Shown one piece after another: positions 4,052 to 51,591 of a DNA stretch of 64,000 bases (the first letter of the stretch is position 1; the number at the start of each line of letters is the position of its first letter). The notes beneath the pieces were generated by a model that was not told where the DNA came from, searched no databases, and was given only the letters and a program-made list of their open reading frames with translations. Source of the DNA: Penicillus capitatus. Lineage: Eukaryota > Plantae > Chlorophyta. Both the position numbers and the translations under genes were made by a program. The stretch spans positions 62,001 through 126,000 of the forward strand of contig OZ287710.1 of the NCBI GenBank assembly GCA_965649825.1. The letters are read 5' to 3'.

Positions 4052-4219
4052 TGTGCCGGACGTCTCATACGACGCCTCCTAATCGTACTATTCCCCCACA
4101 ACGCTTAAGTACTGTCAATTTACGACACAACAATGTGTTCAATTAAGAAAGAAGTAAACGTTTGCCTGCTTGCGTTGTCAAGGAAGACGAATGCTTCGAT
4201 AAGTTGATGTGACTTGAGC

Positions 4220-5373: not shown

Positions 5374-5523
5374 CTTCTGCTCGGGTTCCCGAAGATTCGA
5401 ATCCCACTGTCCCTTTTCAGGCCGTTGTGCTCTCGACGAAAAATTGCGTGACGCACCGGACGTGTCGTTGGGAGTCGATCCAACTTTGTCAATCGGTCGT
5501 TCATGTACGCATGTGATTGATGC

Positions 5524-6430: not shown

Positions 6431-8432
6431 ATGGAGAATCCGAGAACGACAACGAAGAGTTACCCGACGGCGGGAGCTCTCTACGTTGGTGATCTCGACG
6501 CATCTGTGGACGAAGGACTTCTCTACCAAATCTTCTCACGCGTATTGCCGTTCCATCGTTTGCCGTTTCGCCAACGTACGAGCGTGCGCGTGCACGCCTG
6601 TGTGTTAATAGTTTGGTCCAATCGCGTCAATTCGCGTCTGCCGCGACTCGGTGTCGCGCAAGAGTTTAGGATATGCCTACGTCAATTTCATCGCCTCTCT
6701 CGATTCCCAAGCGGGTAAGCCAAACGCTGCTGTTGTCTATCAACCGACCACCACCTGGTTTGGTTCAGCGCAAAAAGCAATGGAGGTGTTGAACTACACG
6801 ATGATTCGCAACAGGCCGATGCGTATCATGAAAGCACAAAGAGATTCAGAACTGCGAAGATCGGGAGTTGGCAATATCTTTGTGAAAGGATTGGATGCTG
6901 AAATCGATTCGCGCACATTGCACGATACCTTTGAAGTTTTTGGGTCTATTGCCTCTGCCAAAGTGGCCATGGATGACAGTGGGAATCCACTGGGATATGG
7001 CTACGTTCAATATGAGGCAGAAGAATCGGCTGTTGCAGCAGTGGAGCGTGCAAATGGAATGTTGCTAAAGGGACGGCAACTCTATGTAGCGCCGTATAAA
7101 CCTAAAACAGCACGGATGGCAGCAAAGGGCTTTACCAATCTCTATGTGAAGCACTTTCCACCGTTCGTCGTAGATGACGACTCATTCCGAGATCTCTTTA
7201 AAGATTTGGGCAAAATAACAAGCATCTATCTTCCCAAAGCAAGCATTGGATGTTATGATGAAGGAGTCGATGTGGTGGTGATGGTGAACAGGGTGAAGAT
7301 GGAAAGCATAAAGGATTTGGTTTTGCCAACTTTAGTGACCCTAAAGAAGCAGCAGAAGCTGTGGCAGCTCTCGATAAGAAATCTTTTGACGGAAGTTTAC
7401 TCTACGTTGCGCCAGCGCAAAAGAAAAACTTCAGAACCCGTGTTCTGCGAGACAAGTACGTGGCCTTTGTTATCTCTGTCTGCCTCGTCATCCATCTCTC
7501 TTCTTCTTCTTCAGGTTTGAGCAGATTAAGCGCGAACGGCAACGCAGTTGTCAAGGACGAAACCTTTACATCAAGCATATTAGTTTGGACTTGGAAGACA
7601 AAGACCTCCAGTCCCTGTTTGAGAAATTTGGGACAATCACCAGTGCAAAGATTATGGTTGACGAACAAGGCCAGAGTCGAGGATTTGGGTTTGTCTGCTT
7701 TGCATCCCTCGAAGAAGCATCAAATGCCATGAAAGAAATGAATGGAAAAACCGTAGATGGGCAGCAAATGTATGTGGCAGAGGCACAGAGCAAGGCAGCA
7801 CGCCAGGTTGAACTCTCTCGCATTCGCATGGCGACTTTGGGTCTGGGTGGAATCGGAACGGCACCGTACTCTCAGATGAATCCAGGACTTCTGCAGCCAG
7901 GGACCGTGTGGCCAGGAATGTATGGCTCGCACAATAACTCAGAGGATTTCCAGGGCAGAGGCAGAGGACGTGGAACAGGAGTCATGAGAGGAGGCGCTCG
8001 CGGAGGAGGCCGTTCCATGACAGGAAGAGGCCGCACTCCAGTTTGATCATGCATTCCTCAACCGTAGTGGCATATGTGGTCTGATGTCTGTAGGCTGGGC
8101 GTGGTGACGGAGGGCCGTTCCGTCCGAACTTGCAGCAGAATTCCATGGGGCCATCCACATTCCCTGGTGGAAGCAACTATCTATATCCGAATATCGTGCA
8201 CATGCCTCAGCAGAGCCCCCGGCAGCAGAAAGTTGCTCTTGGGGAGTCTCTGTATCCACATGTCTCGAGTCTGCAGCCGAAGCGCGCAGCCAAGATCACT
8301 GGGATGATCTTGGAGATGCCCAATCATGATGTTGAGGCTTTGTTGCAAGATCCAAATGCTCTACGAGCCAAGGTGGAAGAGGCTGTGGTTGTCTTGAATG
8401 AGAGTGGAGTTATGGATGATGAAGCGGAATAG
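6431..8432 (+). CDS. PABP: Cytoplasmic poly(A)-binding protein (4 RRMs plus MLLE/PABC domain), multi-exon
   Basis: ALYVGDL, SLGYAYVNF, GVGNIFVKGL, FTNLYVK, SRGFGFVCF and KITGMILEM. GC-AG intron 7239-7291 restores IYLPK|GEDGKHKGFGFANF. Confidence 0.97.
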
Positions 8433-12851: not shown

Positions 12852-15800
12852 TTAGTGTACTGTGGTGGTACTCAGCTGGAACCATTGTCTCAGCAAATCG
12901 GCCATTGTACGTGGCAAGGCGATAATCTCATTCAAAACAATGTAATAAGGAAAGGGAAAATCATCTAGATACTTCATGAAGTGAGGCTCTCCAGCCTCGA
13001 AGCAAACGGTTGCGAGATCCAGGAGAGAATGCTCGGGATTGTCCAAAATAATAAAGGACACCATGACGCCGGGTCGGTGACAAAGTTCATAGGCATGTCT
13101 TTTGAGGACACTCTTTTCATGAAAACGGCCGTCTGCGATGATGACGACCAACTGATGGAGCTGTTGTTGAACGGATCTTGTTGAAAAATGCCTTCTTTCC
13201 GCCTTGTCCAAAATCTGCTGCAGGGATTCTAGGAGATGTACCATGGGCCGATCTTCGATGCGATTGTCCTGATCGAAGTGCATTCGGTCGATGATCTGTG
13301 GTCCATGGGCATCTGTGAATGGCATTCCCAGAGGATGCAATACCGTCTGTTTCCCGGAACCGCCAAAACTGAGGAGGCCCAATTCTCCCACGTCCAAACG
13401 CGACATGGCGCGTGTCATGAGTGTTAATGCCTCCAAGGCGAATGTCCCGAAGCCGTTTTCACTCATAGACTTGGAATCATCGATGGCCAGCAGTACCTGG
13501 TAGGTGCGTTTGTTCGGCTTTGTTCGTCTCAGCCAGATCTTGTCTTTGCGATACTGGCTGGCAACATAAGGAATCACACGTTTCATATTGATTCTCTTGC
13601 CTGCGTGACAGAGGGCAGAGATGAGATCAATTGTGTCAAGCATAGGGGATGCATTCCCGCACCTGTTCTGTAGTCTCCTGCTAGACGACTGGCGAGGGTT
13701 GGTTCCAGAACAAGGCACAGATGTTCGGTCAATTCAGATGCAAGGGCAAACGTCGCTGCTTGGCACCGATTCCATTTCTCCTGTGCCTTCGATAGGTCTT
13801 GCACAGAATCTGTGCCATCCACTTGATGGTGTTCGATCTCTGCTCTCGTATCCTCATGATCTTCCATTTCTCTTTCGCCATAAGGCAACGTCTGGTCCTT
13901 GTAACAAACTTGGCTTTCCATTGCAGACACTGGTTCTGGGCAACGGTCTTCGTCTTCATCAGCGATAGACATGTCATCACTCTTTTGATCACTTTCGGTC
14001 TCTTCCACTGGACGATTGGGTTCTTCATCGAGAAGCATCGACGGTATTGGCTGTATCGTTCTCAGCAATCGTTCACCCGACAGCTCTCCTGTTTTGGTTG
14101 CATCGATGTTTTCTTCGGGCTCCTCCTCTTGTCGGATCTTCTCGTTCTGCACGTCAAGCACCTGCTGCATCTGTTCTTCGGTGGCCGTTGCCAATGTCTG
14201 CATTGTGGCTGCGTTTTCTTGCCCTTCCAGAACAAACTCGAATTCCATTGCCTCCAATGATTGTTGATGTTGCTGTACATCTGCCATAACTTCTGCTCGT
14301 TCTTCCATTCCATGCATCGCATCTGTAACATTCAGGTGTCTTTTCCACTCTTCCAATGCATCTCCCAAGCTCCTGAGCGGATTGACTGACTCTTTGTGAG
14401 ATGGCTTCTCCTTGGATGCATTGTTTGATTCAGCATGCTGTGCAGAAGTCAATGCTCCATCTATACCCTCTCCAGAAGTGCCTAACGCAGATGGACCGCA
14501 TTCCGGTGCTGCATCATAGTTCTCCATGACCTCCTCTGCTCGCGAAGGGACATCCACAGACTGCTGTTGCGTACTCTCCTTCTCATGTGTCACGTCACCT
14601 TCTTGATACCCCGCAACAGCTGTTTCCTGAGAAGGCATTGTCGGATCACCTCTGACTCCATCTCCCTCGCTAATCTCAGTTCCTTCCCTCTCTTGTGGGG
14701 CGATCTCCATCTCACTCTCAGAAGAAACGGACAGTGAATCGTCTCCTTCGGATTTCTTATCCTTCGATTCTGTTGGTTGGCCATTATCGTTGTCATCCAT
14801 GTCCATCTGAGATCCTTGCTCGTCTGTCAGATTTTCGTCGTGGTTCTCTTCTCCTGCTTCTGGGTCGATGTCTGTCTGGGAATCCTCTTTCTTGCCTTCT
14901 TTCTCTTCCGTTTCTGCGAATTTCTGAATGGATGGCTCTTCTGACTCTGGCTCTTGAGAACCGGCTTCAGAATGGAGACTGTCTTTGTCGTCTCCCTCTT
15001 CACCATCAAGCTTCACATCTTCGGATATCTGCAATTCTTCTTCCTGTTCTTCAGGTTTCGTAAATCCAGGGTGAGGCGGACCCTCTCCTTCACTCATCTC
15101 ATCTCCGTCGCCGTTATCCCTCTCCTCCTCCTCTTCCATCGGATCTCCCCGTTCAATCGTATCTTCCTTACGGTTCTTTTCTTTCTCTGATTCCTCTTGT
15201 TTTTCATCCAGTCGTCCTTCCATGTATTCAGATGTGTCTCGACCATCTTCATTCTCTGCTTCAGAGGCATCCTGCGTTTCGCTGTCTTTTGGTTGGTCTT
15301 CATCCCACAGCCGCTCATCGACCGTTTCCCCTTCCTTACCGACCTTTCCCATTTGGTCATCCAATCGTTCTTCTCTTTCGTGGCCGCTGTCTGATTCACT
15401 CTGATCGCCCTCTTTCTCTATGTCTTCAAAACGACCTTCAAAATCGTCTTCCATTTCGATCCCTCTGACGTCTTCTTTGTCATTGGCTTCTGCTTGTTCT
15501 TCCTGATCTGCTGCTTTCTTTTGCTTTCCTGTGTTGATCTGATCTTGATGTTCGATTTCATCACTGACGTCTTTTCTACCTTGGCCATCGTCCATCCCTG
15601 TACCGTCCTCTTCTTCAAATTCCCCATCTCCGTCAGCCTCTTCTGCTTCGCCCTCTGGCTCCGTACAGAATCCCTCGTTTACCAATCCAAGGATGAGATT
15701 CATGGAGATATAGCACAGCTTGCATGTTTTGTGGTGATATTCAGTGAAAGACCGAAACAACTGTGAGAGATTTTTCAGCAAAACACGCCCCGAAGGTTGT

Positions 15801-18800
15801 ACACATTTTATCATCATTGCCAGAAGACGGGCAATTTGAACAAATGTCCTGCTCATATCTACCCTCTCCTGATTCTCTGTCCATCCAGTTTCGGAGATTT
15901 TGAGCAGCACTCCGAGCGATTTGTCGAAACACTGAGTGATCTCCAAAAGCCTGTCAAATCCAAAGCACTTAGATAACATCGATTGAATCGTAGAGAAGTC
16001 CGCCATCGTTTCTTCTTCGTCTTCTGCCGCGTTGGCATCAGGTTGACGATCATACTGAACTTGAATCCAGAGCATGGTTTTAATCAGAATGTTCTCGACT
16101 TCACATCGGAAATCTTCGATCTTTTGCTCATCGACATCGCTGGCAGCAGCACTTTTCGAACACAGGCCAGGAATCAAGAAACGCTCTGAATTATGAGCTT
16201 CAGATTCCAAAGAGTCCATAAGTTCCTTCCACAGAGGAATACAATCCGAAAAGCTGCATTGACGCACACCGATTTCTTCCAGCCGTTCTCTGGATAACTG
16301 TATCTGCTGTTTCTCTTTTAATTGCCGCCAAAGATGGACTATAGATTTGAAGTTTTCGACCAGAACTGCAACATCACGGTATGCTATCCCCGTCTGCCGA
16401 CTTCTATGGATGCTTTGAAGTGAGAGCCAGCATTTACTAACCGTAGCTTTCACGTCTTCGCACTGAAGCAAGCACGAATTCAGCAGATCCTGGTAAACAG
16501 GATGGTTCTCGACGTCTCTTACACTACAAAGCATCTTCTCCGCTTCAGTTGTCTTCTGATTCAGCCTACAGGCATATTGTTTTCAGATATCACGAAGGAC
16601 ACCAGGCCCACCTTCTTAGCATGTCCCACTGATGCTCGATCCAACAATGAGCGATGGACTGACAAGGGAAAGGAGGAAATGGTGGTTCTGTAGATGGCAT
16701 CATCATTTCTGACAGTTCTTCTATGGTGTCACTGCATGATGCTGCGGCGACCTCGTCCAAGAGACCATTTAATCTTGGCTCCAGTGCGAAGAACCCATTC
16801 AAGAGTTCTCTTTGCTTTCTCAGGATGTACAAGAAATATTCGGCAGAATGTGACAGAGACTGGATTTCTGACAGGGATAAATCCTTAGCTGGCTGTTTCT
16901 GCCCTTCCCAGATCCTCTGCATTCGATCTATACAACTGTAGTAGTATCTGTCGACTTTCTCAAAAACAGTGGGCGAAATCTGTCGACTGAATCTTGTGGC
17001 CTGTTCCGCTGTCAACTCTCCCTGTCCTAAAAACGATCTCCATTCCAAGACAGGTTTTTCAAACCAGCACCCAATAGACTGTTCATCTGCAAGTCACGTC
17101 AGCTCAATATGCCGTTTACTACAGAAATCATATCACCTTTTGGAATATCGGCCCTTCTTCTGGAAATTCCCAGTCCACGAAGAGTCTTTAAGTAATCCGA
17201 CAGTGCTTTCTTTTTGCGTCCACGTGATCCTTTACTCTTATCTTTCTGCAGTTTTTGAATCCGATCCAATATCCCACAGCTGATCGCTTCCAAATGCTCT
17301 CTGCCTTTTTCGAGCTTATCAAAAACGGGAGACTGCAATGCGAGTTCATGCATTCTCGAAAGAAGTCTGGGCAGCTGATTGAATCGAAGCTCGCGATTCT
17401 CCAATTTTAAGAGCTCTGCCATGGACACACCATTTCTCGACACTTCTTGAGCCATGCCTCGTAGCTCTTCCATCAAGGAATCACAAGTCAAAGGTCTCAG
17501 AGGCGGATCTTGCTGGCAGACGACGACAGTAGATGGACTGCTTTCGTCATCTACATGGCTCAATGCGACATAGCCTGCAGATTGCGACACTTGTGCAAAG
17601 GCTGAAGCGGCCGGTTGCCTCAGCACGTCCTCGGCTTTCTTGCAAAGACGGTGCAGTTTTCTCTGTGCGCGATCCCCTGCCGTCTTCATTGCTAGGTATC
17701 CACGATCTTCCCATTTCTGAAGTTTCACAAATTCCTGAAGCTCCTTCTCTATCTCATCCATTCCTCTCTTCAAAAGGTTGTCGACCAACGACCTGGTTTG
17801 CACCAGAATTTTACAAAGTCAAAGCAGAGAGAAACGAAAAACAAGTCAATTACTGGTGCTGACGATAATAGACGACCAAGTTGCCAAGGATACAGACCAG
17901 TTTTTCATCCCCCTGTCTCGTTTTGAAATGTGCTAAAAAGGCTTCGAGAATAGACATCCGCTCGGAGAATTCTCCCAAAGTTGATAGCGTCAGGTACTCT
18001 TCCAAAGAACACGTAACATCCTCGATCTACACAGAGAGAGCATCGTTTTCCATAGAGAACACATCGGGTCGACTTACATTCAGTGAAGTGTGTGCATCAG
18101 ACAAGATTCTGAGAATGTAGAACCACGTCTTGTGGGCTCCTGTTGCGTGTCTCTTCACCAAACGGTCCAGTGCAGTTTCCCAACTCTCCAATTCTATTCG
18201 CTGCCATCGAACAACCAATCCTGACACCTGTTTGAGTTCGCTGGCCAACGACACGAAAGAAGCCGCTGTCTCTTCCCATATCTGAGATCTGGCAAGCAGC
18301 AGCTCCAATCCTGTCAAGACTTTGCGAACGGGAGTCGTGATTGGCATGGAGAGGACTCTGATACAGATCTCTTTCAGTTGTGTGAGAATTGGATTCTCCG
18401 GCCATTCTTTCAGTAATGCATCGAGGCGAATTCGCAATGGAATGAGGCAGGAATGCGTCAATAGAACTTCCTCCAAACACGGTTTCTCGAGATCTAAAGC
18501 CTCTGACTGCCTATCTCTGGGCAAAGGACGTTTCGAAAGTGATCTGCACACGGAACAGAGATGATAGAGATGACCTAGAGAGAGTCCATCCTGCACAGGA
18601 TGCATAGGAACGATGAGGATGTACCTGATAGCGTCACTTCATCAAACCTCTTCGGTACGTTCCGGTCCAGTATTTGCAGCATGATCTGAGCAACCTTGTA
18701 GCGAATGTCATCGTCCAGATGTTCTTTGCTCTGCTTTGTATCCAATTCTTCAAACACCGAGCGATGTAGGAGAACAATATCTGTGAGAAAGGATCCATGC

Positions 18801-21800
18801 ATCAACGACTCGGATCGAGAAGATTGAGCCTGAGATGGCGTTGCTCTGCTGTGAGCATCGATTGGCATTTCATCCCATTCGAGCTCTTCGAGATCGAGAA
18901 AATCTTGATGGTGATCTGGAAACATGGCTCTGTAAGATGCTTCTTCCGCCTCTTCATCCGTTTCCATTCGGAGCGTCTGTGCACTAGTTTTGAACAGTTT
19001 TGCCTCCTCTTCTGCTTTGGAGTCCCGAAATGCATCGAGCTTCTCGAAAACGTGCATTAGGTTTCTGGCCAGTGTGCTGAATTTCGCCTCGGCTGTGGAC
19101 TGAAATGGTGTGTCCTTGAGACATCGGCAATGAAAAGTCGATACACAGAGAGCCACATGTAAGCACATTAACTGCATTTCGAATACAACAGCATCGGTGT
19201 CTGGCACCTGGAGAAAAGTGAGAGGACTGCCAGAGGTCTTAACGGAGAAGGTTACTTCTAAATCCGTGAATCTGTTAAAGAGGATACGGCCAATTTTCTC
19301 AACGGTGTCCTGCATCCCAAGATCAGACGCGTCATGATTCGGTATCACTGCCATCATCTCCTCTGCGCATTTCTCCATGAACGAACACTCAGGACGGACG
19401 CTTTGGACTCTTGTAAAGGATGCTATGGCACCGAGGCCATGACAGATCTCTAAGATCCCATGGAAAAATGGCTGAAGAATATCCATATACAGTGGGTGAT
19501 CTTTCTCTGTCTGGCGCATGAAGTTCTTGGATGTTTCGATCCAGTTGAGGCTTTGCGCAGTAATGGTATCCTTATCATCACATGCCTTGTCGTCGAGGCC
19601 TCTCATCAGTTCCTCAATTCTCTCCAATGTGCCTACGAAGCATGTCTTTGTGAGGCAGGGAATGTCGAAAGGCGCACCCTGAGAGGCCAAGTACTGATGA
19701 AGGCAGTGACAGAGTTCTTGATACTGAGACGGTTCTGGTCGGGCGACAGTTTGCTCGTTGAGTATCGCCACCTGAGCCTCGATCATATGGATGGTGTTTG
19801 ACAGCTCTTCAATCTTCTCTGTTTCGTCGAATCCTCCAGCAATGCTCTGGATGTCTTTTCGAATGGCCAGTTCAGGTCTCATGTCAGAGGCAAGAGTGAA
19901 CGATAGATGTCGTGCCTTGAACTGCTGCTTGGTGGCGGGGTCTACACCAACGGGAGGAATGGCCAGACGCATACGCAGATAACCCAGCAGTACCCATGCT
20001 TTGCCTAAGCAGACCAGTGCTCTGGCTGATCGGACTGGATGTGCCTTGACCAGCAGATGGCAACAAGGCAGATAACATGTCTCGGAGAGGGTAACCATCT
20101 CTGCATGATCACTGTGACCAAAATGAAGTGTTAGACATCTCAGCACATGCTGCATCGTATCATCTGCATCTTCAGAATCTCTGCTTTGCATAAAGCGGCA
20201 GAAATCACGAAGCAGCTGTTGAATGGCTGATCTGCTTGTCGATGGAAAACTGCTGAGATGTGCCCATAGGATACATGCCAAGCTAACGGCTATCTGATAA
20301 CGCATGTCAAAAATAAACTGTTGACTGGAGACACGATGTGAACGAAATGCACACAGCAGGTGTCTGGATGCCAGTTTGAGGTGCCTCAAAAAGCATGGAG
20401 CATCCAGGATTGAAGGCATCTCTCTTGTGCATGACGCTGCAGCAAACGTTAGACTTCCCTACAGACATGAGTGGTAGGTAACAGACATCGACATGGTCCA
20501 CTAAACCTGGTAGATAATGGCTGGTCCATCGAAATGCGTATCTGGAAAAGGCACCTGTGGTCCAAAGTGCTTAACGGAAGGCAGCGTGATTTGTGTCAGG
20601 GTTGTAGAAATCAGCCATTGATAGAGAGCATTCTGCATGAGACAACAACACGCATTTCGCCAGTCGATCTGAGGGGAATTGTCGTCCGATTCCTTTTGTG
20701 TGGCATCCAGGAGCCACAGGATATCTTGAAGGGCGGTCATGTAGCTGACAGGAAGGGCATGATGATCTGTGGCCTCTTGGATCTGCCATTTTAATTCATT
20801 AGAGATGTTCTGTGCATTGCTCTTGTTTTTGTCCTCGATTCCGCAAACACTTAGAAGCCACGGCAGCAGAAATGTCAGAGAACTTGTGGAGTGAACTGTT
20901 CGCTGTAGACAGCGGAGATGTGTTTGAAAGCCACGATTGGATGACGACTGCATGTACATGGGTGTCAAGAAGAGCTCGAAACTTCCACTTCTGCCGTCAG
21001 TGATCCGGCTTCCTTCATGTTGATCGACGAGTCTCTGTCGAGCGACTTGTATTTCTGAAAGAGTTAATTCTAGAGCTTCGCAAACGACAGCATCTGTCCC
21101 ATTCTCTGACGCACATGTGTATGCTGCCAACGATGAGATGGACAAAGCGCCCAACAACGATCTAAAGAAGCATGTCTATCGACCAGACACGAACAACCAT
21201 TGGTCCGTCCAGGTACCTTCTCAGATGAGGATCGTGCATCAGGCCTGTCAACAGAGCTAAGCAACGCTCTTCTTGAGTACCGCGCTCATGTTCTTCGATG
21301 TCCATGTTGACAGGATCGGCCTCTTCTAGCAACTTCAGTTCTCGGAGGATGGACAATTGTGTCGGATCCGCCATGCACGCATCGGGTTCTTCGCTGAGGA
21401 GAGCGCAGATATTGGCAAGCTTCAGATGATGGTGGGCTGTTTCAAGACATCGATGTTGTCTCGGATGGCCACCATGTTTCCACAACAGGGATTTGTGTGC
21501 CTCGATCTCTGGTAAACCGAACGCCGCATTCATGCCATCAGCGATCAATCTCCACCTGAGATACAGAGAATTAAACGAACCAGAGGAAATCGAGATAGGT
21601 TAACGGAACTTTGCCGAGAGGCTAGAAGACAAGGGGAACTTCGCTGCTGCTTTCGTAACGATCTTTCTCATTTTGACCCAAATATAGATGACAGTATCGA
21701 GAAACTCCTGCTTCAGCTGTTGTCCTGCCTTTACTGCCATCCACTGGTGCCAAAAATGACGAAGGTGCTTCAGCAGTGCCTCCAACTACACTGGCCCAAA

Positions 21801-24800
21801 GTCACACCATCCAGGACAAGCACATGTACCTCTGGCATGCTGTATTCCGTGACCCTTTGGTTGTTCCCGTGTGCGATTGCCGTCTCAATGTAATCATGAA
21901 AGAAAGAGAAGACAGGGAAGATCCATTCAATCAGCAGTGTGTGTGCGTGTTTGAAATTGTGTCGAAAATGCGTCTCTGTTGCTCGGATGTATGACAGCTG
22001 ATAGAAGGTGTTCTGTGTCAGGATCTCCAGATTTGCGTTCTTGCAACTGACAAGACCTTCGCACTGCAGCTGCAGATCCTTCATCAGCATCGTCAGAGAC
22101 TCAGAGGATAACCTCTGGTCTACAAAAACAATAGGAACCTCCAGTCCTAAGCACTCGCTCATAATCGACGCACCTGATGAAGCATTCTTCCAATAGGCTG
22201 GATCAAACGGAAGGAGCTTAGACCACGATGGATGGTTGCCTTGTGCAGAGCAAACAAAGTCTCGAAATAAACGGCTGCGACTTAGATTGTGTGCCATCTC
22301 GTGCAAGTGATACCAAATGGGCATCTGAAGACACACACTGTCGATGTAACGTCTTGTGACAGGGGCATACATGTAGACTCCAGTGCTGGATGTGCTGCAA
22401 CTGCTCTGCGTTCATTCTTGATATCACAATTCTGGGAGCAATCCATGCTTCATGTATTCCTGATTGATTGGCACCGTATTTCGATAGGATCAGGGTATCT
22501 CGAAACATGGATGAAGCCAAAGATGAATCTGCCATGGACGAAAGGGAAAGCGATCTCAGTATCCACAGTGGAGGACCCTTCTCTTTCTTCCGAGGGATGC
22601 TGACCTCAGAGCTTTCTCCAGTTCCTCTGTCGCTGTTGTGCTCGGCAAACATCTCCTCAACAACTGTCACATCATGTCTTTCCATACTGGGCTGATGGTA
22701 AACCTAGAGGCAGAAGAGAATCGGAGTCAGAGTATATTCTTCTTTAAATCATCCTCATGTATCATATTCACTAGCATTCATGTCATCATTTTTGAGAGCA
22801 TTGTCTGATCAGCGGTTTGGACATTAGAATCATGTTGACATCATTCGAAAGATGGTGATGTGCATCATCCCCTCAGACAGGCAAAGGCAATTGAGTGGTC
22901 AGAAGGAACAATTGTTTTTTGCATTTCATAGACAGGCCAGTCCAATCAAGTGTACAAACAAACTCATCATTCCTCGCCGTAAAGATGATGCACAAGGTCG
23001 AGAGCGATGGTATTGGTATTCGGAAGGTTATATACAGGGTTACCTCTTCATAGGCAGCACGAATGGCACATGCCGGATCGCTCCCTGCCTCTGAAAGATT
23101 CTTGAACAGAGAAATGGCCTGGAAGAGATCTCTGATGTTTGGTGTCTGTCCTGCCCAAGGCCTTGATGTCTCGAGATGCAAAGCGTGTGCTTTTGTTAGT
23201 GCTTCAACTGCCGATGTTTCGTGGACTTGCATGGCAGACTGTATCATCATTGGCAGATGCACAAATGTCTTTCTAAGGACAGAATCGGCGACGACACTAG
23301 AAATCTGACAGACAGCTCTGTCAAAAGAGATGTCTCAGTTCTCGGAGATGTACCTCGTTGGGCAGATAGGTTTCTAGGGAGCGATTTCTCATGGCTCTCG
23401 ATATCTCTCCATTCTTTGGATCATAGCTGAGAAACAGTCGAAAATCTGAATGCGGTTTGATAATGCGTGCTTCTCCATTGGTTCCTCCACATTCGTTGAG
23501 ATGGAGAACACCATCTGGCTCCATCACAGAATTCAGGCGATCTAACACTGTAGGATTGCAGAGATTGGCATGATCCAACAACAACCAATCGCCGTTCTCC
23601 ATGGCCTCTACCAATGCACCATCCACCCATTCAAAACAACCTGTTAAACATCCATCCCTTCACACTGCTGTGACATTCTCTTCTTGTGTTTACCAGCCGA
23701 GGTGCATTCGTTTGAATGAGAAAGAATGTCGTCTATCCTTGTTGAGTGACATTTCACCAGATCTATAAGATGCTGTGGAGCGTTGTCATGCTCCAGAAGG
23801 CTCTTGAGTTGTTGCAGGAAGGATGGAAGAAAATCGGAGAGCGATTCCACTTTCGCCTCGGCAAACCCTATTCGTTTTTCCATGTCGCTTCCAAACTCCT
23901 CTAGCCTCCCACTAAGCTCCAGAAACTGCAGGATGGCACCTGGATTTAATTCAGAAACGAGCTCGGCGAACAGGGTTCTTGTTAATGCTTCTGTCTCTTT
24001 GCAAGCCTGCACACCTGTATGCGATCCAAGAAAGAAAGGTTGATGGAGTTACTTTCAGCATGTGTCTGCTGTTCTCTCGTTTTTCAAATCCACCCAGCAA
24101 ATCACTGGAGTCGGTCCCTGGTGTTAAAGTGACTTCCACTAAATGCTGATGACATAATGCTGCCAAACAACGTACGAGGCATGTTTTTCCACTGCTCGAA
24201 GGGCCGACAATCAATGCTGGCCAATTCTTGACAACGCATACGGCCAACGATTCCAGAAAGGGCAAATGATGTTGGATAAGGAACAGATTTGCCAGCCGTT
24301 CTCCTGCACCTAAACGCAGTATCCCTTCTCACATAAATCGTCGAGATAAGGGACAGAGATGCATTTGGCATTTCATATCAGAATACGTGCATGTGTAATC
24401 ATCAATTGCTTTCATCCCCGAAAGATGGTTTCAAACAGTATCATCATTGCCGAAATGCACCATACATCCAATCCAACACTTACTCTGAGACATGCGTCGA
24501 AGATGCTGGTCTCCGATGACAATGCAGGATTCGGAGATCAGCATCCTTGGAGAGGAACACCGAAAAGCGGCGTTGAAGATTTCATGATACAAGGCGCTCA
24601 GAGATTGCCTAGAATGCATTCCTGTGTCAATTAAACGACACGTGGACCTGCAGACTGCATTGAACCTGTCTTCGTTCGAGCGAAAACGTCGACAGAACAG
24701 AATCTCTGCTGCCTTCATGAGATTTGATGCAACATCCGATGATCCTTGCGCCCCGTCTTCTACCAGTGTTGCCCATCTATGCACTCCTTTTATAGTAAAT

Positions 24801-27800
24801 GCGACAAAGTGTGACACCTTGCCTTAAAAAGTCTCGCAGATTGAATTCCCATGGACCACCACTGCTTCCCATTTTGCCGCTGGCGCAGAGTTGGCTAACC
24901 CGAGACAAAAACTGAACCATCCCATACAAGATTGGCGTATCGATTTGATTGCTGCACAGTGCCAATGCTATCTCTGTCAGATCGCTTTGCCGAAAAGGCT
25001 CGGCGTAGACTCGCGTAAATCTGTTCAGAAAGGACTTTGGGAGTCCCTTTCGCCCTCCTCCTTGACCAGTCGGATTCTGTGAGGCAAAAAGCCGAAAGGA
25101 AGCAGGACATGTGAATGTTCTATTCAGTTCGGGGACGAAGATCTCGGTTCGATGATCTGTTAGAGCGTTCAATCCTTCCAAGATCTGTTGATTGGCCAGA
25201 TTCAATTCATCGAGGAGTACCCAGTATCCACCCTTAATGGCACGGAGCAATGGTCCATCACACCAGCGAAACTGACCAGGTCTGCCGCCAGAAACGGGTA
25301 GATCTGCACCGAGGAGATCCATCATGTCTGTCTGTTCACTTAAGTTGATTCGGATCAGTCTATGGCCTGTCAAAGCGGCAAGGGCAGAAACCAAACTCGT
25401 TTTGCCAACTCCTGGACTGCCTTCCAGCAGGACTGGTTTCTTCAGCTGCATGGCACGGAGAAGACGAAAGACATTGCGCTTTGGAGTTGGCGCTGTCAGG
25501 TTATACTTGAGATCTGCGATGGGCTCATCAGATCCGAGAGGCAGGGCAAAGGGAGATAAGGCAAATACTCCTTGATGGACATGACACTCCAATCCTGTCA
25601 GATCTCCTTTAATTTGAGCCAGGGTTTCATCACAGTTAACAGGAATGAGTTCATGGAGGAGTTGGTGAGATCTGGTTCTCAAGCCTGAGATAACGTCTGC
25701 TCCTTGGGAAGCTAAAGACAGCTCCAAGCCGTCCAAAAAGACCATTGCTATCCCATGCAGCAAAGCTGGCCATTCTCCCAGCAATGTAGACATGCGATGG
25801 GTAAAGTCTGCGACAGAGAGCAGATCACGTATCGTGACGGTTGCATGCGTATCTGCTATCCATTTTCGGAACTGAGTCGTAAATTCTAAGAACGCGCAAA
25901 CTAAGGGACCCCTCGACGGCAGATCCTGCATATGGATTTCGAGAATCGGTCTAAGTTCAGAAGGATCGTCGATGGGAGGAACCCAGATCTGTGTAAAACG
26001 ATTTGAAAGGGCAGGGGAGAGTTCTTTCTTTCCGAAATCGCCTCCGGGATTCATTGTTGCCACGATTCTGAAGTCTGGATGGGCAGTGACGATTTCTGGC
26101 GGCTCTCCTCCCTTCTCGGCAAGTGTGAGCGTTCGTCCGACATCCAGCACACTGTTCATGCGTTCGAGCACGGCATCTTCTGCCAAGTTGAGCTCATCGA
26201 TGAGGATCATGTCTCCTTTCTTCATTGCCTCGACCAGCACACCATCCTCCCACAGAAACGGCATCTGCAAAGAAGCAACGAGAGATGCCAGCTTCTGATG
26301 TGACACATTCAGTTGCTTCAGAGTACATTGGTCTCTGGCGATCCTCCTCTTTTCCTTCTGTGAAAGGACATGCGATTGAGCTTTTGCATTCAGGGTATCT
26401 GCCAATGCCCTCAACGAACAAGCTTTCTCTTCGATCACAGAAGACAGCTCGTTGAAGGGCAGTATCTCGGTATCTGTGATCGGCATATCGATGTTATGTC
26501 TCTTCCATAAAGGATGCGTTTCAAAATGCGCCAGAACTTCTTGACATTGTCCTTTGAGATAGGACCGATCTCGCACTGGTCTGAATCCGCCCACAAAATC
26601 TGCCGTCTCTGTGTGCAGATGGCAGTTCAGGATATGGAGTTTCTGATGGTTCAGTCGAGCCAATTCCTGACAGACGCTTGTCTTGCCGGTTCCTGTATCT
26701 CCAATCAGCAGCACAGCTTCTTTCATTGTCAATGCTTTCTGCACCAACTGAAACATCCTCGTCGTCGAAGGGATCCACTCCAGTGAACAAACGGAGATGT
26801 GGTTCTGCGATGGTGGGACCGTGTAAAGCGTCGAAACATCGAGAGGCACTTTCATGGTCCTTGAAAGAACCTCCAAGACGGTTTGTTTCTCTGCATTGTT
26901 TCGCAGACGCTCGGCCAGTACGTAGTAGCCGTTCTCTGTTAATTGAGCGTAGCCATCCGCTGGCCGTTCTGCCCAGCGGAATAGATCACGGGCCGTGATG
27001 TATCCGTGTTTTCCTGCAAAGGCATTGCTCATCTGTCTCCTTCTCTGCAGTTCCCTCATGACAGTGATCATCTTTGTGGCGAAGCTGCGCGGAATCTCAC
27101 TCCTTTTCTCCAGAATCTCAGCGAGTTCTGAATCGGGAATGTCATCGATGTTCAGTTCAAGGAACCGACTGCGGAAAGCTCTGGAGAGATGTTTGCGTCC
27201 TGCATAGTGCATTGGCGGATTCTGTGTTGCAAAAAGCATGAAATGTGGATGCGGTTTGATTGTTTGCTGCAGATCTGGAACATAGAGTTCCCGATGATCA
27301 TCTAGTAGTCGATTCAATGCCTCCAGCACTTCAGATGGGGCTAGATTCAACTCATCCAACAGAATCCAATATCCTTTCCGCACGGCTTGGACCAAAGCTC
27401 CTTCCATAAACACAAGCTGTCCTGTCGAATCGGCAACGTAGCATCCCAAGTACTCCTGCAAATCTGTGTGTTCGTGGTTGTTCATACGTATCAGCTTATG
27501 ACCTAGACGCCACATCTGCTTCCTCTGTGTCCACGTGAGAGAGGGCCGAGTCACCTGTCTGCTCTGCCAGATGAGCAACCAGTGTCGTCTTACCACTGGA
27601 TGTAGGCCCTTGAAGGAGAATTGGATGGTTCCTAGATACAAAACGCGAGATCGGATGAGGCTGTTCTCGAGACGGTCGTCCTACCGAAGAACAACAGCTC
27701 TCGCAAGATTCTTGAGGTTTTCGGCGATGCTTGGTGTTACAACGAATTTCTTTCCCGTTGCACATCCATCCACTGGTATCTCTTCTGTTCCAGTTTCTAA

Positions 27801-30800
27801 CCAGAACTGTTCAAACAACACTGTCTCCTGCTTTCCTCGCGGCCGTTGGGGAACTCTCTTAGGCACAACGGGATCGATATCTTCTGCCAAGATGTCGTGA
27901 TGAATGAGATTTGCCATTTTGTGATGCGAGATGCTGTCCAACTGCGTCGCGAAGGTCATCAAGGCACCATCCATCAAGGCTCTTTGCAGTCCATAGGTAC
28001 CGGCCATCTTCTGAATGTACTCCAGAAAACGACACAGTGTGCGAAGGCTGTAACAAGGGGACTGTCCTGTACCATCTGTCAATCCACCCCTGCTCTCTTC
28101 TTTCACTTTTATATAGAAATCGACAATTCTCGAAGCTGTCATAGGCGGTCCGAGTTGTGAAAGATATCCAGAAACGATCATTTCCAGATCCTCCCTGCTC
28201 TCCGGTTCTGCAAACCAGAATTCTGTGAACCTGTTTCTGAGAGGTGCAGCGAGATCCCGTTTGCCAAAATCCGTTGCCGGATTCATGGCCCCTATCAATC
28301 TAAACTGAGGATGCTTTGGCACAAGGACGGATCCTTGATCGGCAAGTGTCAGAGACACATTCGGTCCTGGTTCCAAAACAGCAGCCAAGCAATGCAGCGT
28401 TTCTGGAGGAGCTAGATTGATTTCATCCAGAAACAGCCAGTATCCTTGTTTCAATGCCTTCAGCAGCATTCCCTCAACATACTGAAAGGCAAATGATGCC
28501 GATGCTGCACGACGAAAACGACACGCCTTGGTGTAGTCTTCTTCAAACCGTAGCCATTCTTCTCTACGGAGAACACCACTCATTCACGTCATGTCGAGTC
28601 TCATGCAGCAGAGATGATGTACCCGAGTTCAGATGTCACATCCTGTTTCTGGCGTTTTGCTCGATGAGAAGACGTGACCGTCTCCACCTCTGCATCTGAT
28701 CGTGTCGATCTGGCTTTGTCGATGGCGACCTTGAAAGCGCGCTCCAAGTTTTTCCAGTGACTCCTTTCGGCATACTTAAGAACACGCGCCACAAATGCCT
28801 CATTGTTGCCCTTGGTCCATGTTCTCTTCATAAGATCCAGTAAACGATGAACGAGGGGCAGGAGAACATCTTTTGGCGAAATCGGCTTGAACCCGCCCAG
28901 TAGATCCGAGCTATCTGTCTGCTGGCTGAGATTCAGAACAATCAGTTTTGCTCCTACATGTGAGGCAATGTGTTGAACCATGGCTGTTTTACCCGTTCCT
29001 GTCTCGCCGATCAACAAAGCAGACTCCTTCATTTGCAGACATGTTGACAGTTGCTCTAACAGCCGAGCAGAGTGGCCGGTGTGCACAAACAGTGCCTGTC
29101 TCTGCATCGGATGAGTGCGCTTCACAACAGACAGACTGGATCGACCGATCCGCACTTCATTCTCTTTCACCTATATCCACCACAGACGCATTCAGATCAG
29201 GTGCACAGAATTCAAGTGTCAGAGCTCTGTAACGTTCAGATTCGATAACGGAATCTGAATTGACTGGAGATCTGTTTTTATTTACTTGGACGGAAAACAT
29301 GATCATGCCTCAAGATGCATGACTGTAGACTTGACCAAGCATCAAAGATTATTGTCGATCACGCGCGGGTCGTCCTCACCGTGATCGATGGTTTGTTCAG
29401 GAGGAGATGATGCATTGCATCTTGTTCGGTAAGGCACCAGAGAGAGGCAAATCCACGCATGAGAAGCAGCTTAGATTCGAGAGATGGCAAAAAGGCTGCA
29501 TAGCAATCGTGGCATTCGGCCAGTGCTGCGTGACGGAGTGCAAACGGCAGGCGTTCCATGTCAACACGCTCCAGTCTATCGACACGATGCAAGATATCTC
29601 CATGCAGAGTCTGCAAAGACACCATATCGCATTTAAACGTCATGTTGTGTGCGAGGACGATGGTGTCACTTGCAATCGATGGCACCATTTGTGGATGTCT
29701 CTTAAGGAGAAATGGCGTCCAATGTGCAGCCGGTGAACATCTGACCCACAACACTCCATACAGCGCGTCACCAATTGGCGAAGATCTGGGCAATCGTGGA
29801 AGGAGTCCAGATGGCATTGGTTGGTGATGCACTGAATGAAGAGGAGCGCAGCATATGCAAATGGCAAAAGAGGCAGCAGTTGAGGAAACAGTGTTTGAAG
29901 AACGAGGACGTGCTCCTCCAGAGATGGAGATGGTATTCTGATGATGGAAAGCAGACCACTCAGCACATCCTACCACACAGGCATGACCGTTCGATAACTG
30001 TTTTCAGGAATTGGATGGACTTTAATAGCATCCGCTGACCCATAGGTACCCACACCACTCCTCTCTGGAGCGCAGGTCACGGTGGCGATGAGATGGAACC
30101 CATCTCGGATGTTTAGTGTTTCTGCCCTTTGAGGAATGGCCAATCTTCCATTCTCGAGCAAAGGAATGAGGGATGCCAGCACTTCAGGTGGAGCCACATT
30201 AATATCTTCAACAATTAGCCATTTTCCGTGGCTTACTGCCTGTCTGGCACATTGAAATGGGATCGGCAAGATGGTGAAGTAAACCTCTGCCAGTGGTCCC
30301 GGTTGCCATCGGAATTCGCCAGGAGTGGATGTGCAGACATAGGCACCGACAAGGCTCTTGGCATCCATCTGATCATCGATCTGTATCCAAATGGCATCGT
30401 CGTTTCTTGTCTGGCGCAGCATCTCCCTTATACACCGTGTCTTTCCACATCCTGCACAAGGAGTCAGTGATTGGTAGGAGTCTCGGCATCAATGCTGTCG
30501 CATTAGATACAAAACACGGACCAAGTGAAATCATCATCCCCTTGATTACGTTACAGAATCTCAGTTAAGGAATCAGTGAGTGCCTCACATTGGCTATGAA
30601 TTGCCATCGAGAAGAACGGAATCATCAGAGATTCATACAAAAGACTCAGTTGCGACTAATACCCATATCAGCACGTGCCGGAGCACATCAGTTAGGGATA
30701 ACTGGAATAGCTTTCATCATTGCCTTTCGCATCTTATTGCCAAACACGATCGAATGCTGTTGTCACATTACCTGGGGGACCTTCCAAGAGACATGCTCGA

Positions 30801-32067
30801 CGTTGATTCAATGCCACTGCCATAGAGAAGAGAGCACGCTGAGATGTGGGTGTCACGACAAATGCCATGGAAGGAACTTGGTCCGGAATGGCATGTCTTT
30901 GTCTGGCTCTCCTAAGAAACGAACACCGTTCCATGTATTGTCTTTCTCACAGAAAGAGCTCTGTGTCTCAGACGAGGATCTGATTTTTAGTCATCGGCAA
31001 GTGAAGCCTCTTCTAGGCTAGACTTTCATTCAGTTCATCATGGACATAGATAGATAGATGGCCCGACGGCAGATCATGGAAGTACCTCGATGCAGCAACA
31101 GTGACACCGGCAATGGATACGTAATCTGGTGGCAATGCAACACTCTCTTCTGCGTCATCTGTCATGAGTTGCCCCTCAGACAGTAATGAACTCTCTCTGT
31201 CACACTTAGCTGCCATCTCGCTCGATTCTGAGTCTTCGTTGTCGAGTCTCGCATGTCTGTTAGAAAAAACAGGTTCTAGCGATTTTCAGAATCACAGATC
31301 GGGAATCGCACTTGAACGAACAGGATAGGATGGTAGATGTCGGCACTTTGAATTTTTGATACAGCAGCATTTTGGTTTCTTCACTCAAAGCAAGGATTTT
31401 TGCGATTGCTTCAATGCCACACCATCGTATGTTCTCATTCTAAATCCCATCGTCAAACGATAACTCTCGATCTTCTATACGCACCTCATGCATCAGCGTG
31501 GCCTTCCAATCAGCAACATTGCTTAGATAAGGCACTTCCAATGGGATCGCATCCAGGAGGTATAGATATGCATCTTCTTCCGACAAATGACACATAGATT
31601 TCACATCCCCATAGTCAAGAGAGACACATTGAGGTGTTTTTTGGATCAGTTCCTTCACACTTCTACAAGATCATGATGATCTGAACGGACAGCGTTTTGA
31701 AAAGGTTATGAACCTTTTGAGGGTAGGAAATCGGCGATACACTCGACACAAGGCGACGGTCACCAAAAGAGAAGGGACACTCTTGGACAGCGCCTTCAGT
31801 CCTCGGGGCAGCAGCGCGATCAGGTGCGGGGCAAAGCACTGCAACGTGACACGTGTCGTGGATGGCACCACGAGCCCCTTAGCGAAGATCTGAACAACAA
31901 CCGGCGCGTCTATATCTTCGTCGTCCTATAGGCACTCCGCCTCCATCCACGAACGCTCTCTACCGTCATATGGAATGGACCAGGAGATCGTGCCTCTCCA
32001 CGACGTCGCGATAGGCTGCCGTTGCTCGAAATCGCTCGAGACATTGGTGCAGAGTAGGACACGCCAT
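12852..32067 (-). CDS. MDN1: Midasin (Rea1), AAA-ATPase for pre-60S maturation, roughly 25-30 exons
   Basis: Six AAA modules (LLEGPP|GCGKT, GETGTGKT, QGPTSSGKT, GDTGTGKT, EGSPGVGKT, GPSSSGKT), LDELNLA repeats, PWEFNLRDFLR|W, a long linker, a D/E-rich region and a C-terminal MIDAS domain (AIDDSKSM). Exons were traced across all ORF-track breaks. Start MACPTLHQCLERF is inferred. Confidence 0.98.
22723..22795 (-). ncRNA. Box C/D snoRNA candidate, target unknown (MDN1 intron 22704-23043)
   Basis: Minus strand: C box ATGATGA (22783-22789), internal D' ATGA and C' ATGATT, D box CTGA (22727-22730). No terminal stem and no recognised rRNA complement. Confidence 0.6.
22802..22879 (-). ncRNA. Box C/D snoRNA, predicted guide for LSU rRNA Am807 (yeast numbering; snR39/snR59, U51 type)
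   Basis: 7-bp terminal stem TGTCTGA/TCAGACA, C-like ATGATGC, 12-nt guide CACCATCTTTCG complementary to conserved LSU CGAAAGAUGGUG, D' ATGA and D CTGA (22809-22812). The D'+5 rule lands on the A equivalent to yeast A807. Confidence 0.88.
22895..22975 (-). ncRNA. Box C/D snoRNA, predicted guide for SSU rRNA Am541 (yeast numbering; snR41/U62 type)
   Basis: C box ATGATGA (22964-22970) and D CTGA (22899-22902), preceded by CAATTGTTCCT, complementary to 18S AGGAACAAUUG. D+5 lands on the A541 equivalent. Confidence 0.8.
24368..24458 (-). ncRNA. Box C/D snoRNA, predicted guide for LSU Gm805 (snR39B/SNORD2 type) and possibly an 18S Cm (human Cm174 equivalent); MDN1 intron 24310-24483
   Basis: Flanking stem GCATTTC/GAAATGC, C box ATGATGA (24441-24447), 13-nt guide ACCATCTTTCGGG before D' ATGA (D'+5 = G805 equivalent). 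A 10-nt TGCACGTATT before D CTGA (24378-24381) is complementary to plant-type 18S AAUACGUGCA. Confidence 0.9.
29214..29341 (-). ncRNA. Box H/ACA snoRNA, 3' hairpin predicted to guide pseudouridine in LSU helix 69 (yeast 2258; snR191/U19 type); MDN1 intron 29171-29379
   Basis: Hairpin 1 (CTTGG/CCAAG, TCATGC/GCATGA), H box AAATAA (29278-29283), hairpin 2 (CAGA/TCTG base, TTCAGATTC/GAATCTGAA top), then ACA plus 3 nt. Pocket AGTCA + GTTAC pairs with GUAAC-UA-UGACU, 14 nt from ACA. Confidence 0.85.
30457..30544 (-). ncRNA. Box C/D snoRNA, U18/snR18 type, predicted LSU Am649 guide (MDN1 intron 30452-30771)
   Basis: Stem CAAGG/CCTTG, C box ATGATGA (30531-30537), 14-nt guide CTTGGTCCGTGTTT complementary to LSU AAACACGGACCAAG and D CTGA (30464-30467). 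The D' box is degenerate (TGTA). Confidence 0.88.
30556..30634 (-). ncRNA. Box C/D snoRNA candidate, target unknown (MDN1 intron 30452-30771)
   Basis: Terminal stem GAATC/GATTC closing C-like CTGATGA (30622-30628) and D CTGA (30561-30564). Lies between two recognisable snoRNAs. Confidence 0.65.
30640..30727 (-). ncRNA. Box C/D snoRNA, snR38/SNORD1 type, predicted LSU Gm2815 guide (MDN1 intron 30452-30771)
   Basis: Stem AAAGGC/GTCTTT, C box ATGATGA (30714-30720), 12-nt guide CCAGTTATCCCT complementary to LSU AGGGAUAACUGG, D' CTGA (D'+5 = G2815 equivalent) and D CTGA (30646-30649). Confidence 0.9.
30964..31046 (-). ncRNA. Box C/D snoRNA candidate, target uncertain (MDN1 intron 30912-31085)
   Basis: Stem TGTC/GACA, C box ATGATGA (31035-31041), D' ATGA and D CTGA (30968-30971). 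Splicing out the whole 174 bp joins TVAASR|RARQRH in frame. Confidence 0.72.
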
Positions 32068-50996: not shown

Positions 50997-51591
50997 TCAT
51001 TTGCTTGCGGTCTTTTTGTGATCACTGTCAGGATTATGAAGCATTCGCAATGTACGCAGCTTTTCTCGCAAGCGTGCGTTTCTTTGCTCTTTTTCTTTGT
51101 TCTTGTTCCACAGAGCATCAGATGCCTCGGTACATCTGTCCAGATGATTACTTATTTCTTTCACTCTCTTCCTTGCATCTTCAACTCTGACAGAAATCGT
51201 TTGTGCGTCGTCAGAGAGACGCATTATCTGACAATGCTGCTCGTGAATGACGCTAACGAGATCGCGCATTTTTAGTTCTTCGGTGGCCTCGCGTGCAACG
51301 AGACAACGCTCTTTCAAGTGATCCATGATGGCATCTCCGTTGTTTATGTTCGCCCCAGCAAGGTCAGAAACTTCAACATTTCTTGAGATATCCACCGTTT
51401 TTTGCACAACGCTGTGTGGTACACATTAGGGTTATCTCAAGAATTCAAGAACAAAACGAAACAAACCGCTTTCTCTCAGTTGTGGCGGAACGACGGTCTA
51501 GACTCTTAAACGTTTTGCTAGGTTTCGTCTCCCTCAAAAGAGAAGCGGAGTGCGATGCATCCGTTGATCGATTGGTTCTCGATATCTTCAT
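50997..51591 (-). CDS. Hypothetical coiled-coil protein, 2 exons
   Basis: ATG at 51591, GT-AG intron, then a helical ORF (VEDARKRVKEISNHL..EKEQRNARLREKLRTL). No family recognised. Confidence 0.55.

Follow-up and report, generated by a model that had tools for sequence, protein, structure and literature searches.

Five long introns of the gene for midasin (MDN1) in a stretch of the Penicillus capitatus genome very probably serve as host introns for nine small nucleolar RNAs (snoRNAs), of which eight are of the box C/D type and one is of the box H/ACA type. The stretch, referred to below as the window, consists of 64,000 nucleotides (nt) of contig OZ287710.1, from position 62,001 to 126,000 on the forward strand. 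The gene lies on the minus strand and all nine units have the same orientation as the gene, as shown in Table 1. The units have canonical boxes, mostly with terminal stems, and guides that abut the D or D′ boxes, and they are conserved in two other species. The existence of discrete small RNAs, the position of their ends and the modification of ribosomal RNA (rRNA) are what these features lead us to expect. An earlier note on this DNA, made by reading the letters, had proposed nine units distributed over the five introns as 3 + 1 + 1 + 3 + 1, and our analysis arrived at the same distribution, with all units on the gene strand. The two clusters of three that it described are those of introns A and D, in which the units follow each other on the host strand with short spacers.

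Long introns of MDN1 and the units they hold

The minus-strand open reading frames (ORFs) of the host gene contain the Pfam domain AAA_5 and the midasin lid domains AAA_lid_7 and AAA_lid_5. The homologues retrieved by protein search are midasins, and the spliced translations align to midasins, which bears out the identification of the host as MDN1. A chain of open frames on the minus strand supports the extent of the gene given in Table 1. We note that the named proteins closest to the midasin of the window, and to the poly(A)-binding protein (PABP) encoded elsewhere in it, are at most 48% identical, and that they come from a mixture of animals, fungi, plants and algae.

Introns were confirmed using alignments of homologues through the spliced junctions, in place of custom gene-finding scripts. 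The models from such scripts were discarded: some contained spurious long introns in which small exons had been swallowed up, and others broke long exons with short introns that do not exist. All five of the intervals that the earlier note had taken to be long introns run from GT to AG on the minus strand. Splicing out these five, together with a few short ones, gives stop-free translations of 909 and 710 amino acids (aa), and BLASTP alignments to distant midasins continue through the junctions of introns E, D, C and B; for intron B the aligned homologue, P0005, is 37% identical with E = 1e-119. The Walker A motif GPPGCGKT of the first AAA domain is restored only once intron D is removed. Intron A, whose splice sites agree with the consensus, connects open frames, and no homologue covers its junction.

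The same continuous BLASTP alignment defines four other MDN1 introns, of 58, 46, 53 and 49 nt; an additional intron of 59 nt leaves the spliced translation stop-free, and the gaps between aligned exons in the PABP gene are approximately 53 nt. The five introns, at 174–340 nt, are therefore clear outliers. The statement that they are the only long introns in the window holds for MDN1 and PABP, which are the two genes checked. In this gene, intron length does point to the snoRNAs, as the earlier note had suggested.

On the gene strand, the five introns contain eight pairs of C and D boxes, 60–75 nt apart, and on the opposite strand they contain none. Within the entire 64 kb, the motif ATGATGA occurs 15 times on the minus strand, and six of these occurrences lie within the 1,217 nt of these introns, whose opposite strand has no copy of it. 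The C box reads ATGATGA in six units, ATGATGC in one and CTGATGA in one (where the relative L003, described below, has ATGATGA), while every D box reads CTGA. Terminal stems of at least 4 bp (4–8 bp or more) are found in A2, B1, D1, D2, D3 and E1, and are kept or compensated in the relatives. The spacers from a D box to the next C box in introns A and D are 30, 19, 17 and 23 nt long, and the first unit of an intron starts only 36–73 nt from the 5′ splice site. The H/ACA unit C1 is a 127-nt element, whose minimum-energy fold and consensus fold both have the order hairpin, hinge, hairpin, tail; in its 3′ hairpin the upper stem and the ACA are separated by 15 nt. We consider A3 and E1 to be the least certain of the nine units.

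Table 1. Positions in the window of the host gene, its five long introns, the nine predicted snoRNA units and the rRNA antisense matches found elsewhere in the window.
Feature	Position	Strand	Details
Midasin (MDN1) host gene	13583..31670	-	Stop codon 13583-13585 is the 3′ end; 5′ end approximate
Intron A	22704..23043	-	340 nt, GTAACC...CTCTAG; holds A1, A2, A3; stop-free frame joining
Intron B	24310..24483	-	174 nt, GTAAGT...GTTTAG; holds B1; junction spanned by alignment to P0005
Intron C	29171..29379	-	209 nt, GTGAGG...ATATAG; holds C1; junction spanned by alignment to L125 midasin
Intron D	30452..30771	-	320 nt, GTAATG...GTGCAG; splits AAA1 Walker A codons; holds D1, D2, D3
Intron E	30912..31085	-	174 nt, GTACTT...TTCTTAG; holds E1; junction spanned by alignment to L126 midasin
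A1, box C/D	22895..22975	-	C box ATGATGA 22970-22964; D box CTGA 22902-22899
A2, box C/D	22802..22879	-	C box ATGATGC 22868-22862; D′ box AUGA 22844-22841; D box 22812-22809; stem TGTCTGA/TCAGACA
A3, box C/D	22722..22794	-	C box 22789-22783; D box 22730-22727
B1, box C/D	24368..24458	-	C box 24447-24441; D′ box AUGA 24415-24412; D box 24381-24378; stem GCATTTC/GAAATGC
C1, box H/ACA	29214..29340	-	Two hairpins; H box AAATAA ~29283-29278; ACA 29219-29217
D1, box C/D	30639..30728	-	C box 30720-30714; D′ box CTGA 30691-30688; D box 30649-30646
D2, box C/D	30556..30634	-	C box CTGATGA 30628-30622; D box 30564-30561; stem GAATC/GATTC
D3, box C/D, U18-like	30457..30544	-	C box 30537-30531; D box 30467-30464; stem CAAGGGG/CTCCTTG; D′ box degenerate
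E1, box C/D	30964..31046	-	C box 31041-31035; D box 30971-30968; stem TGTC/GACA
Chance rRNA antisense matches, 13-14 nt	5402-5414, 7481-7494, 21065-21077, 51128-51140	-	No C box or adjacent D box
Chance rRNA antisense matches, 13-14 nt	6975-6987, 57034-57046	+	No C box or adjacent D box

Conservation in relatives

Three close relatives of the window were found in metagenome assemblies by means of a midasin search, and the corresponding loci were retrieved. L001 belongs to the same species, with 99.3% nucleotide identity to the window; L002 is colinear with the window at 86% nucleotide identity; and L003 has an AAA-ring exon that is only 62% identical in protein to that of the window. All nine units occupy the same introns in L002 and L003, and intron D of L003 splits the Walker A codons at the identical point. 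In L002, the snoRNA bodies are 90.1% identical to those of the window as compared to 74.2% for the rest of the introns, and in L003 the figures are 61.7% and 36.7%, the latter being essentially unalignable. The bodies, with their boxes, guides and stems, are thus conserved beyond the flanking intron, which is one of the points on which the earlier note had made its proposal depend.

The stems provide examples of compensation. The stem of B1 is GCATTTC/GAAATGC in the window and GAGGA/TCCTC in L003; that of D3 is CAAGGGG/CTCCTTG in the window and CAACGGG/CCCGTTG in L002, which amounts to a swap of G-C for C-G; and a T-A pair in the stem of A2 becomes G·T in L003. In C1, five of the 31 pairs are altered on both sides, and 95% of the cells are paired as compared to 19–37% in slid controls. 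Only one of 500 shuffles reaches five two-sided changes, in a covariation analysis that depends on a single divergent sequence. The H box of C1, in the hinge, follows the pattern ANANNA throughout (AAATAA in the window, AAATGA in L002 and ATATCA in L003), and the ACA is invariant. The two strains of the window's own species (the window and L001) differ at a single position among 790 nt of snoRNA, as compared to approximately 5.4 expected from the locus-wide rate of 0.69%; this hints at constraint on the snoRNAs, and is suggestive only.

The midasin loci L125 and L126, which are more distant (46–47% identity), have few introns, and all of the guide motifs are missing from them. Hosting of snoRNAs by MDN1 is therefore a feature of a small clade and not of midasins generally. 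A candidate for a fourth relative, L124, had been reached via PABP and was rejected, its contig being non-syntenic with no MDN1 nearby. L124 (metagenome ERZ25074695) encodes at 321–4751 a Ty3/gypsy-type polyprotein of 1,476 aa with capsid, protease, reverse transcriptase, RNase H and integrase, approximately 5 kb from a PABP homologue that is 56% identical to the PABP of the window; it represents either a different organism or a paralogous locus.

Guides and predicted rRNA sites

The rRNA genes (rDNA) used for the target search were eukaryotic and metagenomic and were fetched using a conserved pattern of the large subunit (LSU), there being none in the window. Five complete rDNA units were delimited with Rfam, and a wider search covered 120 rDNA loci, all of them foreign to this organism. 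Four guides, in A2, B1, D1 and D3 (13, 13, 12 and 14 nt respectively), are exactly antisense to LSU sequence that is common to all five rDNAs. In A2, B1 and D1 the guide, 12–13 nt long, is immediately followed by an AUGA or CUGA D′ box, and the 14 nt of D3 are accompanied by a degenerate D′ box.

For a C/D unit, the predicted site is the one that faces the fifth guide nucleotide, counted upstream from the D or D′ box. The D′ guide of B1, ACCATCTTTCGGG, pairs with LSU CCCGAAAGAUGGU (tabulated as CCCGAAAGATGGT), and the predicted site is the G of CCCGAAAG, or CCC[G]AAAG. The D′ guide of A2, TCACCATCTTTCG, pairs with LSU CGAAAGAUGGUGA (tabulated as CGAAAGATGGTGA) and is predicted to select the second A of the same motif, CCCGA[A]AG, two nucleotides downstream of the site of B1. 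The two targets are at positions 790 and 792 of one LSU helix in the rDNA L005, and we take them to be the adjacent Gm805 and Am807 of yeast 25S rRNA. The D′ guide of D1, CCAGTTATCCCT, pairs with LSU AGGGAUAACUGG (tabulated as AGGGATAACTGG) in the peptidyl-transferase loop, where the predicted site is the middle G of CAGGGAUAAC, or CAG[G]GAUAAC; this is presumably Gm2815 in the central peptidyl-transferase loop. The guide of D3, CTTGGTCCGTGTTT, pairs with LSU AAACACGGACCAAG, and its predicted site lies within GAAACACGGACC / GAAACACGG.

The H/ACA unit also has a candidate site in the LSU. The arms of the 3′ pocket of C1 (AGTCA and GTTAC) are invariant, and they form 5 + 5 bp, all of them Watson–Crick, with LSU GTAAC-TA-TGACT at the same site in all five rDNAs. 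This pairing would place the U of GUAAC[U]AUGACU, which we take to be in the helix-69 loop, for pseudouridylation. With the guide of D1 directed at the middle G of the peptidyl-transferase loop and the 3′ pocket of C1 fitting the helix-69 loop, both of the LSU positions singled out by the earlier note are represented. Its broader description of the units as guides for LSU sites fits the four LSU C/D guides; however, the best fits of A1 and D2 are to the small subunit (SSU), and approximately half of the elements are without a target.

The SSU leads concern two D guides, and emerged once additional rDNAs were compared. The D guide of A1, CAATTGTTCCTT, which is invariant in L002 and L003, leads to SSU GAGGAACAAUUG and fits GAGGAACAATTG at approximately SSU position 540, so that the target is probably GAGG[A]ACAAUUG. 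The D guide of D2, ACTGATTCCTTAA, likewise invariant, leads to SSU CUGAAGGAAUCAG and fits CTGAAGGAATCAG, in a semi-variable stretch that follows GCGCTACACTGA; the target here is probably CUGAA[G]GAAUCAG. A pairing of the D′ guide of A1 with LSU AGACAGGUUAGUUU was rejected as a chance score, having four G·U among 14 pairs and not being kept in L003.

Individual guides differ between the window and L003. In the L003 ortholog of D1 (6937–7010), the boxes and the D guide GTATTAGTCGCAA are kept, whereas the peptidyl-transferase guide is replaced by AAAATCATCCCTTT, which has no match in the rRNAs examined. The peptidyl-transferase guide is therefore not the conserved part of D1, and the change resembles an exchange of guides in a snoRNA that is itself conserved. 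The L003 ortholog of D3 (7092–7178) has a second guide, CCTTACCAAAAA followed by CTGA, with 11 nt complementary to LSU TTTTTGGTAAG (UUUUUGGUAAG), in a region that also gives a weak match to the snR61 family of Rfam. The counterpart in the window, CCTACCAATCA, pairs over only approximately 6 bp and is degenerate.

Resemblance to known families was assessed with Rfam. The check suggested by the earlier note yielded matches in these introns, on the minus strand, all of them below the gathering score. A permissive scan of the whole window gives five matches, of which the top three are to C/D families in these introns and on this strand; the snoRNA matches (snoR38, SNORD96 and SNORD18) fall nowhere else. 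A permissive scan of the region by itself adds SNORD51 (in A2) and a weak match to SNORA79 (in C1). The scores in bits, with the gathering scores in parentheses, are 34 (45) for snoR38, 26.4 (43) for SNORD96, 23.2 (41) for SNORD18, 21.5 (50) for SNORD51 and 21.2 (55) for SNORA79. By unit, D1 matches snoR38, B1 matches SNORD96 and ceN70, D3 matches SNORD18 and A2 matches SNORD51, and whenever a C/D family is matched, it is the guide that forms the matching block. In L003, the orthologous units independently match snoR38, snoU18, SNORD2 (B1) and SNORD33, and the ortholog of A3 is ceN65-like. We therefore describe the units as being like these Rfam families by guide and target, and not as members of them.

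In more specific terms, A2 and B1 share the guide cores CACCAUCUUUCG and ACCAUCUUUCGGG with yeast snR39/snR59, snR39B and human SNORD32A/SNORD51 and SNORD2, and, as in those families, the predicted targets are an A and a G of LSU CCCGAAAGAUGG that lie two positions apart. They differ from these families in scoring 21–27 bits where the gathering scores are 37–50, in their second guides and in genomic context, yeast snR39 and snR59 presumably being in other host genes. D1 matches the full-length model of yeast snR38/plant snoR38 (RF00213), with stem, boxes, the guide CAGUUAUCCCU and the same middle G, but falls short of the gathering score and lacks this guide in L003. D3 resembles U18 (SNORD18/snoU18) in having the guide GGUCCGUGUUU right after the C box, kept in all three species, although it too is below the Rfam threshold, its D′ box is degenerate and the L003 copy has a second guide as well. 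C1 has its target U unpaired at the 14–16 nt from the ACA that is usual for the H/ACA guides of helix 69, which we take to be yeast snR191 and human SNORA74/U19, but has no family match at the level of sequence, the best being SNORA79 at 21 bits.

Antisense matches to rRNA are also found elsewhere in the window, as listed in Table 1; those at 5402–5414, 6975–6987, 7481–7494 and 57034–57046 lie outside MDN1 and correspond to conserved LSU sequence. The match at 7481–7494 is present in only two of the five rDNAs, and that at 6975–6987 falls within an exon of PABP. Where they were examined, these matches have no boxes, and they are regarded as chance and used as a measure of the background rate. 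They bear on the idea that the boxes and complementarities in MDN1 arose by chance in ordinary long introns or decayed insertions and correspond to no functional RNA. This idea gains something from the 13-nt matches elsewhere (5402–5414, 6975–6987) and from the Rfam scores, which are all sub-threshold. We nevertheless find it hardly credible. On shuffling the 556 nt of the C/D bodies, the mean number of runs of at least 12 nt antisense to shared rRNA is 0.014, with a maximum of one in 5,000 trials, as compared to four observed, three of which abut a D′ box; the remainder of the window has eight such runs, counting both strands. In addition, within the introns the C boxes cluster on a single strand, exactly these segments are kept where the flanks in a relative cannot be aligned, the stems show compensatory changes, and the matches elsewhere are without boxes.

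A number of observations do weigh against the interpretation of all nine units as functional guides. None of the nine matches Rfam at gathering scores, and the terminal stem is weak or absent in A1 and A3. The species compared are three, with most of the covariation coming from one divergent genome, and the pairing of the 3′ pocket of C1 is limited to 5 + 5 bp. The D′ box of D3 is degenerate, so that its site is placed only within a stretch of the LSU. Only 11 nt separate the D box of D3 (30464–30467) from the first base of the acceptor AG, and for the D box of A3 (22727–22730) the distance is only 22 nt. Finally, four of the 16 C/D guide positions have a match in universal rRNA and a further two have leads, and for A2-D, A3, B1-D, D1-D, D3-D, E1 and the 5′ pocket of C1 no target was found in the 120 foreign rDNA loci.

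The last of these points raises the question of whether only some of the units guide rRNA modification, with E1, A3 and possibly the second guides of A2 and D1 being orphans, which have non-rRNA targets or act as chaperones, or else decaying copies. The orphan elements include the D′ guide of A3, TGCTAGTGAAT followed by ATGA, which is conserved; the D guide of D1, GTATTAGTCGCAA, which is invariant in the relatives; and the element AAGTCTAGCCTAGA of E1, which is conserved. They have no convincing complement in the window itself either, and for the 5′ pocket of C1 there are only weak 8 + 3 candidates, such as SSU ACGGAGAA-UU-AGG. The turnover of guides between species, with that of D1 replaced in L003 and the D3 guide for UUUUUGGUAAG degenerate in the window, would also fit such a picture. 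On the other hand, the rRNAs searched are foreign and not those of the organism, and A1-D and D2-D gained plausible SSU targets when more rDNAs were used. Five of the orphan elements (A2-D, A3-D′, D1-D, E1-D′ and the 5′ pocket of C1) are invariant across the divergence, over 10–13 nt and despite scrambled intron flanks, which argues for function. We consider a mixture of guides with orphans or decaying copies to be somewhat unlikely.

The E1 element AAGTCTAGCCTAGA (31013–31026, minus strand) contains the near-palindrome TCTAG-C-CTAGA and has no rRNA match; it may have a role in structure or protein binding rather than as a guide.

Biogenesis, known systems and window context

The MDN1 pre-mRNA is the simplest source of the snoRNAs, because the units are sense-oriented and start so close to the 5′ splice sites. 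Their orientation and position suggest that they would be transcribed together with MDN1. The nascent intron would be bound by Snu13, Nop56, Nop58 and fibrillarin on the C/D kink-turns and by Cbf5, Nhp2, Nop10 and Gar1 on the H/ACA hairpins. Splicing and debranching would be followed by exonuclease trimming to the ends protected by protein. In introns A and D, where the spacers between a D box and the next C box are only 17–30 nt, endonucleolytic cuts between the units would be needed in addition, of the kind that polycistronic clusters undergo in plants and algae. The mature ribonucleoprotein particles (snoRNPs) are then expected to pair with pre-rRNA, and a C/D snoRNP would 2′-O-methylate the nucleotide selected. 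A functional tie to 60S remodelling is suggested by the position of the units within MDN1.

The D boxes of D3 and A3 are close enough to the acceptor AG that the branch point may lie inside or against the last snoRNA. Both D boxes read CTGAC. No branch-point consensus is visible in the short introns, and for this reason the idea that the D box acts as the branch site was not taken up.

Such ends, 11–22 nt from the acceptor AG, are awkward for an assembly that is coupled to splicing, and would be explained more easily if the units were real snoRNAs with promoters of their own inside the introns, singly or as polycistrons, independent of the transcription or splicing of MDN1. Plants, algae and yeast do use independent polycistronic clusters (PMC7671301), to which the introns with three units are similar. 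However, the nine units are spread over five introns and are all in the sense orientation, the 36–73 nt before the first unit leave little room for a promoter, and the identical intron positions are held in three species. Promoters within the introns thus seem to us very unlikely, and we prefer processing from the introns of MDN1 pre-mRNA.

It can further be imagined that MDN1 is a long-held “super-host”, whose orphan units modify small nuclear RNA, transfer RNA or messenger RNA or aid a folding of pre-60S particles that is tied to midasin, and in which the last D box couples snoRNP assembly to splicing as a feedback on 60S production. We regard this as speculative and unlikely.

Intronic snoRNAs, intronic clusters and a bias toward ribosome-biogenesis hosts are already established. 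Of the 131 snoRNAs of Ostreococcus tauri, 72 lie in introns, and the host genes are enriched in ribosome biogenesis (33%) and RNA processing (18%) (PMC7671301). The snoRNAs of Chlamydomonas reinhardtii are organised in intronic clusters, according to the same article, which cites Chen et al. (2008, Genetics 179:21). The units described here are like these green-algal snoRNAs in their sense orientation, in their location within introns of genes that encode proteins and in having layouts with one and with several units per intron side by side. They differ in that the host is midasin and that nine units occur in one gene. No paper that names midasin as a snoRNA host was found in the literature searched. 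Midasin as a host is a detail about host genes and not a new principle; it fits the known bias toward ribosome-biogenesis hosts and leaves the understanding of snoRNA biology unchanged.

The practical consequences concern annotation. Nine snoRNA genes are added that gene-only annotation overlooks, including predicted guides for the peptidyl-transferase loop and helix 69. For genomes in which introns are approximately 50 nt long, we propose the rule that introns longer than approximately 150 nt merit a scan for snoRNAs. The gathering thresholds of Rfam find none of the nine, whereas the comparison of introns across relatives combined with antisense matching to rRNA does find them.

Annotation of proteins in this region has difficulties of its own. 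The prokaryote-style gene calls of the source assembly split MDN1 into many fragments, and protein-only annotation of such contigs is therefore unreliable. An almost certainly spurious ORF of 143 aa runs on the plus strand across introns D and E, at 30590–31021. The region 14001–16000 has a strong strand skew, with an AT skew of −0.30 to −0.36 and a GC skew of −0.17 to −0.29. It coincides with the last exon of MDN1, a 983-aa ORF without a Pfam match, which is probably the acidic linker region of midasin.

The PABP gene lies on the plus strand at approximately 6600–8430 in the window, and has short introns of roughly 40–57 nt. For both the L003-type PABP (P0125) and the L003-type midasin (P0003), the longest contig on record has 109,373 bases, and on the basis of this shared figure the linkage of PABP and MDN1 seems to be conserved within the clade.

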